This document shows, piece by piece, positions 23,872-27,793 of a stretch of 64,000 nucleotides of DNA. A program made the translations under genes and the position numbers. The stretch lies in the sequence record NC_061445.1; one strand, written 5' to 3'. Under the pieces are notes generated by a model. That model ran no database searches. It was not told the DNA's origin and saw only the letters and a list, made by a program, of their open reading frames with translations. The number at the start of each line of letters is the position of its first letter. The stretch's first letter is position 1.

Positions 23872-24293
23872 TACTGTGACCTCATAGCAAACGTAATTGA
23901 TTGTTTGTCTTCGAGCTTAGGACAACGCCATGTGACAACACACACGTAAGTCTGCTCGTATTGATCGCTCATGGTACAGGCTGTCTGCACGTTCGTCACG
24001 TCTTGCGTCAGACCGTTGTATGGGTCTTCGAGTGCGAGGCGCATGTACGTTGCAATCCAGTCTGCTGTAGTCTGGTCGAATGGGTCAAACAGGTATTGAT
24101 ATACGTCTGCACCAAAGTTCTCTCGCCACTTGCGGGAACGCTTTCTCGTACCGATTACCATGAGAATCTTCTGGACAATACTGTCCATGTTCTGCACGTT
24201 ATCACGCGGTTCAAGTTGAATCCACGCATTGATATCACAATAGATGCGCTCGCTTAGTGGCACGTCTATCAGTCGAATCCCGATTCCTGCCAT
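23871..24293 (-). CDS. Baseplate wedge protein, gp25/GPW-like (140 aa)
   Basis: SIVQKILMVIGTRKRSR.W..NFG..VYQYLFDP pattern. Confidence 0.85.
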   Translation of the reverse strand: MAGIGIRLIDVPLSERIYCDINAWIQLEPRDNVQNMDSIVQKILMVIGTRKRSRKWRENFGADVYQYLFDPFDQTTADWIATYMRLALEDPYNGLTQDVTNVQTACTMSDQYEQTYVCVVTWRCPKLEDKQSITFAMRSQ

Positions 24294-24583
24294 TAGCCAA
24301 ATCTCACGTTAGAACTACCATTTGATGCCGTGTCGCCGCAACTGTTAGGGTCACCTGCACGTTGAGCAGGCTTGCCATTGACACGTACACTTGAGCTTGA
24401 AGTAGCACTACCTGTATGTGGTGGTTTCTTCGGTTTCCAGTGCGGTCGATACTTGTCGCCTTGACGAACACTCCCTTTTCCATTAACAAGCACATTAGAA
24501 GATGCTTGCGCAGGAACGACAGGGAAATAGCCGCTATGTCCAGTAGACAAATCTGTGCCTAAACGAATAGCTTTCTGACCCAT
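24293..24583 (-). CDS. PAAR-domain spike tip protein (T4 gp5.4-like, 96 aa)
   Basis: AIRLGTDLSTGH, VLVNGKGSVRQGD, VRVNGKPAQRAGD, SCGD...GSSNV. Confidence 0.9.
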   Translation of the reverse strand: MGQKAIRLGTDLSTGHSGYFPVVPAQASSNVLVNGKGSVRQGDKYRPHWKPKKPPHTGSATSSSSVRVNGKPAQRAGDPNSCGDTASNGSSNVRFG

Positions 24584-24584
24584 A

Positions 24585-24707
24585 TCAATTCCCTCTTTTC
24601 ATTGCTGGAATCTTAGGAGCTTTGGGCAGTTTGAATGGCGCTGGGCTTAACTTGCGCTTGCCTTTAAGCACGTCTAAGTACAAATTCCAATCAGTAGATC
24701 TGCACAT
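24585..24707 (-). CDS. Small basic protein, 40 aa (MCRSTDWNLYLDVLKGKRKLSPAPFKLPKAPKIPAMKRGN); below the ORF-track cut-off
   Basis: AGGAG 8 nt before the ATG; the stop abuts the PAAR start (TGATATG); first ORF after a promoter motif. Confidence 0.6.
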   Translation of the reverse strand: MCRSTDWNLYLDVLKGKRKLSPAPFKLPKAPKIPAMKRGN

Positions 24708-24731
24708 CGCTTAATCTCCTCTGTTAGACAC

Positions 24732-24739
24732 AAATTAGC
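24732..24739 (-). promoter_or_regulatory. Putative late-promoter motif GCTAATTT
   Basis: Immediately downstream of a terminator and upstream of the baseplate operon. Confidence 0.5.
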
Positions 24740-24757
24740 TTGATACGCCCCAGAAAC

Positions 24758-24784
24758 AAAAACGGGCGACCCGAAGGCCACCCA
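24758..24784 (-). terminator. Rho-independent terminator with a UUCG loop; likely 3' end of the candidate ncRNA
   Basis: GGGTGGCC-TTCG-GGTCGCCC-GTTTTT. Confidence 0.85.
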
Positions 24785-25990
24785 GTTCTTGTGCTTGGAA
24801 TTTTGTCGCTTATCCCCTTACGCCCGATGCAAGTGCCACACGTCATTAGACGCGGAGCCGGGATGAATGACCGAGAGTAGTGGCGCACGCCACGCCTGTA
24901 AGTGACTCTCGGGACATGATAGCAAGCGACCAAGCATCGCAATTGCTATCAGCGACAACATGAGCAATATCATTATTGTCGTACTCTCTTTAAACGAACT
25001 GGGTACATCATGGTTTTGATCAGACTACTCCGCTGCCCTTTGCCCAACATCACTAGGGTTTCAGTTTCTTCATCTCTTTACCGCCTACGTTGCGGCGAAC
25101 CGCGCACAAGAGCAACACATCAAGAGCACACGGCGGAAAATGGGAAAAGTTCCGTATGCGCTAACAGCATCACTCAAGCGAAGGAGGTGGACGTATCGGT
25201 GATCTGCGGGAGTTGATACACGTTTTAACAATCGCTATCTTTTGTGCATTAAATCGAAACAGGAACGCGATTGCCCGCTAACATTTCCTGATCGATATTT
25301 CACACCCGAGTAAGCGGGTTTTCAGCTATGGCAGTACGTCAGCAGATGGCGGCAGACACACTCCATTGAACACTGTTAAGGGCAGTGCCCAACAGGCTGT
25401 GAACAGCTTTGACCAAACGTAGAGTCGCTCGTCGCCCAACATCACTTGAGTATCTCGTCTACATTCTTTTACTCCCTAACGCCGGTACAAGGAAGTCCGA
25501 CGCCATGAGGGTCTGCGGATGTTTATCACTCTAAGACTCTTCCAACTTATCCCCATACGCAGTGAATCGAGTCGTCCGCTGGATAACTCACTGCGTACCC
25601 GTCAATGCGTCGTGCGACATTGAGGAATAGTCGGTGGAAACTTTTATCATGGAGAGTAGATATCTCCCCAATGCACACTGTTATTGCCAGCCAATGTGCA
25701 TCAGGCAGCGTAACTGCAAACTGCTATCCCTATAAGAGAGGCCACAACGCTGGTGGTACGTTCCGCCTGTCTACGCGCCTAGAGGCAAATTGCCGTGCCA
25801 TGTCTGTGCAAGAATACCAGCTGGGCCTTGTAAGCGTCAGCAGCAGAGCAATAGTCTATCGCGTGGGTGCCGGGGTTATCCTCACGATTACAGAGCGCGA
25901 ACTCAAACCGGCTGGAGGCTCGTCACTGATAAACGGCAGCGACAAGTTTAATACCAGACAGCACCCGCTAAGTATACTGTCTGGCTGAGA
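24758..25990 (-). ncRNA. Candidate large (~1.2 kb) structured non-coding RNA of unknown family
   Basis: No credible CDS in an otherwise gene-dense window. Many local stems and nested long-range helices contain G-U pairs that work only on the minus strand. The region ends in a terminator. Confidence 0.6.
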
Positions 25991-26029
25991 CATAATGATA
26001 TTACTATCTGCAATTTTTATTTACAGATT

Positions 26030-27793
26030 TTAGAACGCCTTACGCTCAACATTTGAATAAAGTGTATCGTAAGGTTCAGAGTACAGTTCAGGTCCGCGTT
26101 GTGCGCGAATCGTCACGTAACCTGTATGACGGTTAAACGCTGTGATTTCGACTGTAGGCTGTTTAGGCTTGATAGTCGCATAAATCGGAGCATTCAGTGT
26201 AGGCTCGTCTGTCTGAATCTTATTTACAGATTGCAGAGCAGCACCCGAAACAGTCGGCAGATTGAAACGCAGTTCAGCACGTTTCTGACCGAACGCAGCG
26301 CGAATCATACCACGCTCCATCTCTACGCCATTCTGTTTGAGGTATGCAGCAATGCGACGAGCAATACCGGTCAACTGGTCACGAGTACGAGGGTCGAATG
26401 TACCTTCGAAACTGATTGCTTCCGGCGGCTGACGCACGGACAGATGCAGACCAGTGTTGAAGTAACCCTCAGTCAGAAGACGCAGCACTTCTTTTACGAC
26501 TTCTTGCGTGTTTGGTTTGATTGCAGCGATGCGCAGCTCAGGCACATCTACTTTGACCGGGTCGCGCAGCTCAGTTTGGTTATCCATGTAACCGAGAGAC
26601 ACATGCTTTGCGTTTGCATACGTGTGCTGCAATACGCCAGTAGCACGAATCAGGACAGAGCCGCCTTTAGCAATGTCGTAGAGTTCGTCGCTAGTGGTTG
26701 TGCTGAACAGGTAGTAGTCTGTAGGCACTGCCATGCGATTAACCGCTTCGACTGCTTTGGTCTGTACTTCTTTTACAGTTTTACCGAAGACTATACGACT
26801 ACGGTTAGGCTGAGAAGCAGACACAGGGAAGAATGCGCCGTAAACAACTTCGACGTTCTTCTTGATAGGACGCTCAGATGGAACCTTAGTGCCACCAGAC
26901 AGAGGAGGCAGCTTCACGCCCACCAGCTTGCCTTTGACGATAGCTTTGTTTTCTTTGACAGGCTTGAGGCCGTCAATCACTTTCGCCAGATCAGCACCGC
27001 TAAGAATCTTCTCCAGCGGAACAGCGAGGTTCTGCGGCAAATAGTGTTTCTTGCGATACGAGTAGATTACGGTGTCTTTCTTGATCTGAATAGGCGTTGC
27101 CATATTGCGACCAATAACACCGACCGGCTGGAACGTGTTTGCTTTGTCGTCAGCGATTGTGCCATAAGCCTTCGTGAACTCAGTCTGGCCGATGATGTTC
27201 GCAGCACGTAAGTGACCACGAATGATAAACACAATCTTCGGTTCGTCTTTCAGGCGCAGCTCGTAGCGGTCACGGTTCAGGTAAACCATGCTGTACTTGT
27301 CGCCTTTCTCCAGTTCGAGATCGTACTCATCGTTAGCGTCATCGACAACGACTTTCTTACCCTGATACGTAGAGTAGGTGCGAGCGCCCGCAGACTCAGA
27401 AGCAATCTCCAGTGCCTTGCCCGTATTAGACAGCGCAACTGCGAAGTCCATAACGGCGGGCATCAGGTCGAACGAAGATGCTACTGCATACGGTTTGCGT
27501 TTCGGACCGAGCTGAACGTGTACGGCACTGCTGCTGGACATGAACACGGTATTGCCTGTGTCTTCATGAGTACCAGCGAAGTGCATACCGCTAATGCGCT
27601 CGATGATGTTCGCGTTGAGTGAAGGGAATGCAATATCGCTACCGGCAGTGAAGTCATAAATTTCACCGTTGCGCCATGCGTATGCGACATTGTTCGAACT
27701 AAGACCTACAAACGCATCACCCAGCTGGCGAATCGTCAGCGGCATAATGCTTAGGTCACGAATGACTCTGTGTTGCTTTTGAATGAGGTTCAT
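26030..27793 (-). CDS. Hypothetical, probably internal-head protein with an SH3-like paralogous domain (587 aa)
   Basis: Long ORF; internal ASES followed by TYSTYQG...LEKGDKY...RYELRL...IVF. Confidence 0.75.
   Translation of the reverse strand: MNLIQKQHRVIRDLSIMPLTIRQLGDAFVGLSSNNVAYAWRNGEIYDFTAGSDIAFPSLNANIIERISGMHFAGTHEDTGNTVFMSSSSAVHVQLGPKRKPYAVASSFDLMPAVMDFAVALSNTGKALEIASESAGARTYSTYQGKKVVVDDANDEYDLELEKGDKYSMVYLNRDRYELRLKDEPKIVFIIRGHLRAANIIGQTEFTKAYGTIADDKANTFQPVGVIGRNMATPIQIKKDTVIYSYRKKHYLPQNLAVPLEKILSGADLAKVIDGLKPVKENKAIVKGKLVGVKLPPLSGGTKVPSERPIKKNVEVVYGAFFPVSASQPNRSRIVFGKTVKEVQTKAVEAVNRMAVPTDYYLFSTTTSDELYDIAKGGSVLIRATGVLQHTYANAKHVSLGYMDNQTELRDPVKVDVPELRIAAIKPNTQEVVKEVLRLLTEGYFNTGLHLSVRQPPEAISFEGTFDPRTRDQLTGIARRIAAYLKQNGVEMERGMIRAAFGQKRAELRFNLPTVSGAALQSVNKIQTDEPTLNAPIYATIKPKQPTVEITAFNRHTGYVTIRAQRGPELYSEPYDTLYSNVERKAF

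Follow-up and report, generated by a model that had tools for sequence, protein, structure and literature searches.

A conserved structured RNA associated with a small ORF fills an unannotated gap in the genomes of Alexandravirus jumbo phages

The stretch of DNA analysed here (the window, 64,000 nucleotides (nt) of record NC_061445.1) is part of the genome of the Erwinia phage pEa_SNUABM_3 (MZ443770.1; genus Alexandravirus, 266 kb); by blastn, positions 24700-26030 of the window correspond to 86700-88030 of the phage record. The minus strand carries every substantial gene of the window. Genes are tightly packed, and 24708-26029 is the sole large gap among them. The GenBank annotation of pEa_SNUABM_3 has no feature within it. 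The gap had been singled out in an original prediction as the only large stretch lacking a credible gene, its status as the only large gap being borne out by both the open reading frame (ORF) listing and the annotation, and had been proposed to host a single folded non-coding RNA of about 1.2 kb. Comparative data described below indicate that the region encodes on its minus strand a structured RNA conserved in relatives, with a small ORF close to the 3' end.

Sequences matching the gap were identified by blastn in 46 phage records, and were found in all Alexandraviruses, including Dickeya phage AD1, in the SNUABM_34 group and in the Sasquatchvirus Y3. Five near-identical isolates match at 100% or 99.9%, the others at 70-79%. 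Synteny with the genes at the two sides, encoding a protein of 587 amino acids (aa) and a PAAR protein, is identical in all relatives fetched. Fifteen versions of the gap, ranging in length from 1267 to 1456 nt and in pairwise identity from 54 to 99%, were aligned. Multiples of 3 make up 11% of the 272 indel runs found between pairs, single bases predominate, and mismatches in the gap alignment show no codon periodicity (no mod-3 bias). The aligned relatives share no ORF of at least 60 aa and, apart from a 51-aa ORF, no frame is conserved on either strand. For lack of a conserved frame, of indel triplets and of a third-position bias, a protein-coding gene or pseudogene was rejected for the 1.0 kb body of the element. 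The identity of the non-coding part (0.48-0.79) is intermediate between those measured in the flanking genes at codon position 3 (0.42-0.67) and at positions 1-2 (0.75-0.98), which is the level expected of a structured RNA. Hypothetical proteins are annotated inside the RNA body of several relatives (L009 2421-2897 (+), L010 2431-2898 (+) and 2334-2609 (-), L002 2711-2854 (+), L005 2315-2464 (+), L012 2155-2316 (+)). These are probably spurious calls, because not conserved between phages.

The 1484-column core of the alignment folds in RNAalifold at -625.7, compared to -389 to -419 in 16 control alignments, obtained by shuffling columns within conservation and gap classes. Two-sided compensatory changes are found in 148 predicted pairs, and in 34-61 in the shuffles. 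In the 5' domain (alignment A2) paired cells are 95.7% versus 85.8 +/- 0.6 in shuffled alignments, pairs changed on both sides are 28 versus 13.1 +/- 2.2, and on none of five measures is the observed value reached by any of 500 shuffles. When partners in this domain are slid by 1-3 columns, pairing is found in only 32-42% of the cells. In the 3' domain 25 of 59 pairs are compensated. The minimum free energy of the single sequence has a z-score of -4.07 on the minus and of -0.58 on the plus strand; this measure is merely suggestive, because six equally long coding segments range from -0.26 to -2.99, and the alignment statistics are decisive. Compensatory changes, conservation in relatives and folding energy relative to shuffled controls all agree with the original prediction. 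So does the preference for G-U over A-C on the minus strand, which is statistically upheld: in pairs compensated from Watson-Crick to Watson-Crick, the remaining cells are 228 G-U and 44 A-C in the minus-strand reading. Even when the structure is predicted on the plus strand, minus-sense G-U cells (134) outnumber plus-sense ones (75). The restriction of the G-U excess to the minus strand argues against a purely DNA-level element.

The supported fold is a chain of about a dozen local or medium-range domains, the coordinates of which are reported in Table 1. The five local stems originally noticed are all present in the comparative structure, and covary in relatives. Three of them are the 5' hairpin and two members of the hairpin series (those starting at 25704 and 25597). 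The others fall in the small ORF, and are the stem 24912-24905/24878-24871 (8 base pairs (bp), 5 compensatory), which encloses 24896-24892/24886-24879 (4 compensatory), and the stem 24951-24936/24930-24917, also confirmed in relatives. The proposed long-range helices did not withstand comparison. The helix between 25860-25839 and 25037-25018 has 70% canonical pairing in relatives and 2 compensatory pairs out of 16; pairing of 25506-25495 with 25357-25346 is 51% canonical (1 of 11), and pairing of 25945-25938 with 24809-24802, meant to join the two ends, 37% canonical (2 of 7). The arms of all three belong to better-supported local helices. The nearer copy mentioned as a competitor of the last helix (24958-24951 with 24810-24803) is instead the conserved pairing. 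In a blind scan, 3 covarying stacks spanning more than 150 nt were observed (mean 0.6, maximum 3 in 20 shuffles; not significant), and 6 local ones compared to about 0.2 in shuffles. The idea of a single folded RNA of about 1.2 kb holds therefore for a structured minus-strand RNA ending at a terminator, and is not supported as far as global closure by helices of about 800 nt is concerned.

Table 1. Features of the gap and of its flanks in the window, listed along the minus strand (paired arms are separated by a slash)
Feature	Position	Strand	Remarks
587-aa ORF	26030-27793	minus	upstream of gap; KMPT-N domain only, residues 140-201
Upstream motif copy AATCTGTAAATAA	26220-26232	minus	within 3' end of 587-aa gene, 203 nt before 33-nt block
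33-nt block AATCTGTAAATAAAAATTGCAGATAGTAATATC	26029-25997	minus	directly after stop codon of 587-aa gene
5' hairpin	25984-25977/25961-25954	minus	variable sequence; 7 of 8 pairs with two-sided changes
5' domain	25723-25946	minus	conserved core GCCUCCAGC...CUCUGUAAUCGUGAGGA...AACCCCGGCACCCACG
5' domain, hairpin	25946-25936/25929-25919	minus	9 of 10 pairs compensated
5' domain, 20-bp helix	25864-25843/25798-25773	minus	10 compensated
5' domain, hairpin	25772-25759/25749-25735	minus	comparative helix map
Hairpin series (25533-25717)	25704-25693/25679-25668	minus	12 bp, 4 compensatory
Hairpin series	25625-25598	minus	comparative helix map
Hairpin series	25597-25588/25565-25556	minus	10 bp, 9 compensatory; capped by 25587-25571
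Hairpin series	25554-25533	minus	2-3 compensatory pairs
Branched domain	25411-25513	minus	hairpin 25509-25472 and twin-module copy 1
Twin-module copy 1 GAUACUCAAGUGAUGUUGGGCGACGAGC	25454-25427	minus	inside helix 25466-25456/25427-25415
Three hairpins (25330-25407)	25407-25396	minus	comparative helix map
Three hairpins	25393-25383/25375-25365	minus	11 bp, 6 compensatory
Three hairpins	25364-25349/25345-25330	minus	14 bp
Three-way domain	25208-25307	minus	closed by 25307-25302/25213-25208
Three-way domain, contents	25296-25286/25264-25253; 25249-25216	minus	7 compensatory in the former
Large domain	25018-25204	minus	conserved GCAGAUCACCGAU, long hairpin 25180-25105, hairpin 25103-25092, twin-module copy 2
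Anti-Shine-Dalgarno-like CCACCUCCUU	25190-25181	minus	predicted single-stranded; mimics 16S anti-Shine-Dalgarno
Twin-module copy 2	25066-25032	minus	392 nt from copy 1
51-aa ORF MILLMLSLIAIAMLGRLLSCPESHLQAWRAPLLSVIHPGSASNDVWHLHRA	24973-24818	minus	N-terminal transmembrane helix (predicted), variable tail
Fold-back closing helix	24958-24951/24810-24803	minus	UUGUCGCU (codons 6-8) with AGCGACAA (3' untranslated region)
Fold-back (24792-24958), internal hairpins	24951-24917; 24912-24871; 24864-24812	minus	
Candidate pseudoknot	24936-24930/24798-24792	minus	UGCUUGG (hairpin loop) with CCAAGCA
Intrinsic terminator GGGUGGCC-UUCG-GGUCGCCC then UUUUUGUUUC	24784-24753	minus	hairpin 24784-24763 and U-run
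Near-invariant block CAAGCUAAUUUGUG-N-CUAACAGAGGAGA	24712-24742	minus	past terminator; outside RNA proper
PAAR spike-tip gene	24293-24583	minus	downstream flank

Two sequence elements stand out in the body. The twin module is a covarying stem closing a conserved loop, AAGUGAUGUUGGGCGA (loop AGUGAUGUUGGGCGA), and is found nowhere else in the window. By eye it resembles a tRNA D-arm (CUCAGU.GGGAGA), the best pairing leaving a 6-nt loop; ARAGORN identified neither tRNA nor tmRNA. The anti-Shine-Dalgarno-like element of the large domain features the heptamer CCUCCUU, which is kept in 14 of the 15 relatives, the exception being Y3. A sponge for CsrA of the CsrB/RsmB type was also considered, and rejected: GGA occurs 15 times versus 22.2 +/- 4.3 expected, with no enrichment.

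The UUCG terminator proposed at the 3' end was retrieved by the terminator scan, as the only minus-strand terminator-like site, and its stem covaries (GGCCUUCGGGUC vs GGCCAUUAGGCU). At the opposite end, 30 of the 33 columns of the 33-nt block are invariant, while identity in the RNA body drops to 55%. The block occurs once per genome. It includes the sequence TGTAAATA, one base off the T4 late -10 sequence TATAAATA, and may also form an 8-bp hairpin. We infer that the block is the promoter or start signal of the RNA. Similar blocks precede both the first part of the RNA and the small ORF in Yoloswag and JA13, phages in which the locus is rearranged. Every Alexandravirus and SNUABM_34-group locus has the upstream motif copy AATCTGTAAATAA in the corresponding position; the Y3 stretch fetched lacks it. 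Inside the 587-aa gene the sequence CAATCTGTAAATAAGATTCAGACAGACGA is conserved at third codon positions also, though identity of the encoded proteins is 70-90%, as if a DNA or RNA signal, perhaps a second promoter, were embedded in the coding sequence. The near-invariant block located past the terminator is probably the promoter and ribosome-binding site of the PAAR/baseplate operon.

The small ORF is intact in all 15 relatives, where it measures 47-53 aa, and internal indels are in frame. The original view that the gap lacks a credible gene is consequently correct for the body of about 1.0 kb, and incorrect for the last ~160 nt. The motif AGGAG-N5-ATG is found in 13 of the 15 versions; SNU3 and SNU34 have a different upstream sequence. 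Codons of the transmembrane segment vary synonymously, and all four CGN arginine codons are found at one position (as read from alignment A1). The ORF is annotated, as hypothetical protein, only in SNUABM_17, _35, _2 and Yoloswag. Searches against Pfam and PHROG gave no family match, Hok/Gef and other toxin families included, and tblastn matches are confined to its own subgroup.

The early coding region is predicted to be folded onto the 3' untranslated region (UTR) by the closing helix and the candidate pseudoknot. The closing helix shifts from C-G to U-G to U-A in phB78, AD1, SNU33 and Y3, and is retained in JA13 and JA29. At the sites equivalent to those of the pseudoknot Yoloswag has UGCUCGGC and GCCGAGCA. 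Fold-back helices are not significant in single sequences, in which 9-133 of 200 shuffles reach the top helix; they are supported because they recur at homologous sites. By prediction and conservation, the element combines therefore a small hydrophobic peptide with a fold-back of the messenger over the start region, as type I toxins do. No antisense RNA gene was identified: a lone sigma-70-like site of the plus strand (25213-25241; TTGATA-17-TATCTT), antisense to the RNA, is far from the small ORF and, as single match, is within chance expectation. The last hairpin of the ORF, 24817-24833 (-), comes in two haplotypes differing at four linked positions. The haplotype CUCGCUUCGGGUGUGAG encodes ..HSLRV followed by a TGA stop codon, CUUGCAUCGGGCGUAAG encodes ..HLHRA followed by TAA, and one of the changes pairs a codon position with the identity of the stop codon. 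The distribution of haplotypes is discordant with relatedness (SNU17, for instance, does not have the haplotype of SNU32 and SNU1, its closest relatives), which indicates recombination of alleles rather than repeated compensatory mutation.

The full RNA is found in the genus Alexandravirus, in the SNUABM_34 group, in Y3 and in one metagenomic contig (L030/L054), scored at 118 bits (L030) by the covariance model R1, which describes the 5' domain. Pattern scans of viral, metagenome and GTDB genome collections retrieved this contig as the one real partial homologue, while L053, L056 and L057 are chance matches. No similarity was detected by blastn in plasmids or in the genomes of E. coli. The 587-aa homologue and PAAR are 1.7-2.4 kb apart in Yoloswagvirus, Rivsvirus (SNUABM_5) and Salmondvirus (JA13, JA29). 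A non-coding part of 0.6-1.0 kb (part A), which includes module and block, comes right after the 587-aa homologue, and is followed by inserted genes (L048 5985-7018, L049 5901-7357, L050 6013-6324, L051 6280-6591). In Yoloswag, JA13 and JA29 a part B, made of the small ORF, 200-280 additional nt and a terminator, is found 0.5-1.5 kb further on. A region similar to part B is present in SNUABM_5, where the limits of the small ORF could not be established. A separate ATCTGTAA block is found about 50 nt before the ORF in both Yoloswag and JA13. From 1 to 7 small protein genes separate part A from the small ORF in Yoloswag, SNUABM_5 and the JA phages. The locus behaves there as an insertion hotspot, and the RNA is in split form. 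Only short modules can be aligned between these genera and the Alexandravirus RNA, and searches of Yoloswag, SNUABM_5, JA13, JA29 and Yen9-02 by nhmmer and model R1 gave weak or partial matches only. Yoloswag and SNUABM_5 have two copies each of a related module, AGACCUAUCUCAGUGGGGAGACGGG, and JA13 and JA29 have one or two; covariation is seen in the inner stem of this module (UUUC/GAGA vs UUUU/GAAA). The family does not extend beyond a single clade of 'hairy' jumbo myoviruses.

The genes upstream of the gap, all in the minus strand, encode dTMP kinase, a NUDIX hydrolase and the 587-aa KMPT-N protein, and form a nucleotide-metabolism cluster. A baseplate module (PAAR, gp25-like, gp6-like) is found downstream. 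The gap is thus located at a module boundary, and not inside a virion block; the late-region location originally assumed has to be replaced by a metabolism/baseplate junction. A 587-aa homologue is always found directly upstream of the RNA, including in the genera with rearranged loci. No relatives of this protein were found in PDB and NCBIfam, and its single-sequence AlphaFold model is unusable (predicted local distance difference test score 34.5). Between the terminator and PAAR is a 40-aa ORF, 24585-24707 (-), with a basic C-terminus (..KAPKIPAMKRGN) and no family match. It corresponds to an insertion of about 120 nt in pEa_SNUABM_3, AD1 and SNUABM_33, absent in other Alexandraviruses, and by eye is present also in Yoloswag (L048 7287-7416) and SNUABM_5 (gp 00114).

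The original prediction could not assign the RNA to a known family, and database searches led to the same result. Rfam 15, which covers among others GOLLD, ROOL, OLE, HEARO, raiA, group I/II introns, RNase P, tmRNA, 6S and CsrB/RsmB, gave no match at the gathering threshold in the whole window, and none at E<=1 in six relatives. In E-value mode (E<=10) the interval 24500-26200 gave only snoRNA/miRNA noise (11-21 bits, E 0.39-8.2). Literature searches retrieved no paper mentioning this RNA. The RNA is real and, within the reach of the databases and literature searched, undescribed.

The RNA has the traits by which GOLLD and ROOL are recognised, being longer than 500 nt, non-coding, rich in covarying helices and phage-associated. 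GOLLD (RF01998) and ROOL (RF03087) are often found on phages or prophages, and cryo-EM shows that they form RNA-only multimeric cages (PMC12286853). The element described here is similarly a very large, multi-domain, phage-borne non-coding RNA rich in covariation and set in a conspicuous intergenic gap. It differs from both in lacking any sequence or structure match (cmscan, E<=10), and is larger, with a body of about 1.0 kb in a transcript of 1.24 kb. It resides in lytic jumbo phages of Enterobacterales rather than in phages or prophages of Lactobacillales, rumen and lakes, does not adjoin tRNAs and carries a conserved ORF, and neither closing nor long-range helices are supported in it. OLE RNA (RF01071), which works with membrane proteins, is comparable in that a large structured RNA and a small membrane protein are genetically coupled, but a functional coupling of RNA and membrane peptide in the phage would be no more than a guess. 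OLE is however a bacterial RNA of about 600 nt from extremophilic Firmicutes; no Rfam match links the two, and its partners OapA, OapB and OapC are unrelated to the peptide.

Dual-function RNAs such as S. aureus RNAIII, SgrS/SgrT and AzuCR/AzuC provide a different comparison. A C-rich element of RNAIII pairs with the Shine-Dalgarno regions of its targets. The phage RNA resembles RNAIII for the long chain of hairpins, the ORF for a small membrane peptide and the exposed C-rich element (CCUCC), for which a role in trans may be supposed. It differs in being phage-encoded, about 2.4 times longer and unrelated in sequence, and in having the ORF at the 3' end, within a fold-back. In the mRNAs of hok/sok and other type I toxins, translation is inhibited by a fold-back due to 5'-3' pairing. 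Shared with these are the small hydrophobic, predicted single-pass peptide and the pairing, found across genera, of the coding start to the 3' UTR; in contrast, there is no toxin-family match, no antisense gene was identified and the upstream body of about 1 kb has no counterpart. We read the RNA as belonging to none of GOLLD, ROOL, RNAIII and hok-type RNAs, and as representing a new family of large ornate RNAs of phages, with an additional role as mRNA of a small peptide.

It is somewhat probable, in our judgement, that the gap is an unannotated minus-strand transcription unit working mainly as RNA, in the manner of a dual-function phage RNA of the RNAIII type. The transcript, of about 1.24 kb, would extend from the promoter-like block (~26029-25997) to the terminator (24784-24753). 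Its first ~1.0 kb (~25995-24990) would be non-coding, forming a dozen or so hairpin and multi-branch domains, each stabilised independently, and the last ~200 nt would encode the single-pass membrane peptide, the early coding region being folded onto the 3' UTR by the closing helix and the pseudoknot. The multi-hairpin body may act in trans on a partner, either protein or RNA, for which it would serve as scaffold or as decoy. The twin modules would be a pair of docking sites, CCUCC could pair with ribosome-binding sites, and the fold-back would throttle translation of the peptide. An RNA-only assembly like those of GOLLD and ROOL is a version of the same idea, and is equally open. The body plausibly acts as RNA in its own right because its architecture is selected across genera, is separate from the ORF in distant relatives, and features paired modules and exposed conserved single strands. 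We regard as possible, if doubtful, a more specific proposal, that jumbo phages express during infection an autonomous RNA of more than 1 kb, which would either form an RNA-only or ribonucleoprotein assembly, similar to GOLLD and ROOL though in lytic phages with Gram-negative hosts, or serve as RNAIII-like master riboregulator or decoy directed against host translation or defence, in addition to encoding the membrane peptide.

Several observations weigh against an RNA with functions of its own. The sigma-70 scan did not flag the 33-nt block, and AATCTGTAAA/TGTAAATA is not enriched in the window, so that it is no general phage promoter motif; the promoter is a putative one. Alexandraviruses have no terminator between the 587-aa gene and the RNA, hence read-through from the upstream operon might supply the transcript. 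Homology of the body to distant genera amounts to one module of about 30 nt and to a covariance model hit on JA13 of 9.3 bits (E=0.14). The anti-Shine-Dalgarno-like element is missing from Y3. Long-range and closing helices have no statistical support, and a compact global fold of the GOLLD/ROOL type is unproven. Finally, RNA and ORF share one transcript in Alexandraviruses, and a purely cis-regulatory role may be conceived. In this main rival explanation, unlikely as we consider it, the ~1.0 kb RNA would be a giant cis-acting leader, a 5' UTR which times or doses translation of the peptide, the latter being involved for example in lysis timing or superinfection exclusion, or being toxin-like, and regulation would take place by refolding, processing or sequestration of the Shine-Dalgarno sequence. 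The single promoter-like block and the single terminator that serve RNA and ORF in all Alexandraviruses fit a leader, as do the enclosure of the ORF by a conserved fold-back and pseudoknot, as in type I toxin mRNAs, and the possibility that the upstream CCUCC masks the AGGAG ribosome-binding site. CCUCC and the Shine-Dalgarno sequence do not covary, however, and SNU3 and SNU34 differ in the latter region yet share CCUCC. Moreover, the ORF of Yoloswag and JA13 has its own ATCTGTAA block, the non-coding part being located elsewhere, before unrelated inserted genes, and 1 kb with about a dozen covarying domains exceeds by far any known leader.

The remaining explanations dispense with an active RNA. 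A passive inter-operon element, that is, a long structured 3' UTR or a processing or stability module insulating the metabolic from the baseplate operon, would explain why the region is oriented like the two operons that flank it, coincides with a module boundary, lacks an upstream terminator and has a strong downstream one. We find this improbable: for insulation a terminator alone would suffice, whereas the length of the region is kept at 1.27-1.36 kb across these genera, and conserved single-stranded motifs, twin modules and ~148 compensated pairs across genera denote selection on a specific architecture. Still less credit is given to a DNA-level element, such as a replication origin with primer RNA, or a packaging or recombination site. 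The ATCTGTAAA copies could be iterons, the motif being confined to this locus and repeated in it (twice in pEa_SNUABM_3, up to four times in JA13), and the block is conserved beyond all else, as expected of a protein-binding DNA site. One-strand G-U tolerance and compensatory changes over 1.2 kb are however signatures of RNA, and neither an inflection of GC skew nor an AT-rich unwinding region is seen (GC content is 0.47-0.53). An R-loop primer RNA of the ColE1 RNA II type, a variant of the origin hypothesis, is conceivable. Decayed genes or chance hairpins deserve almost no credence. The z-score of -4.07 is only moderately past that of coding controls (-2.99), but length, synteny and pairing are kept across lineages 48-79% identical, and a non-functional region is practically refuted by the covariation controls.

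To our knowledge, families of bacterial or phage RNAs longer than 500 nt are very few. GOLLD, ROOL, OLE and HEARO each proved to have unexpected biochemistry. If it is an autonomous RNA as proposed, the element would surpass in size every other structured RNA family known from phage, ribosomal RNAs and introns aside. The annotation of about 46 genome records is corrected, as the RNA gene is lacking and the small ORF mostly lacking in them. The proposal is directly testable, because clean comparative support comes from isolated, culturable phages (the pEa_SNUABM series, Alexandra, Y3, AD1) with tractable hosts. The split of body and ORF in distant genera is a ready-made evolutionary experiment on which parts cooperate. 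The locus would represent a natural case of one transcript being both a giant structured RNA and an mRNA, and indicates that gaps in jumbo phage genomes can conceal RNA genes.

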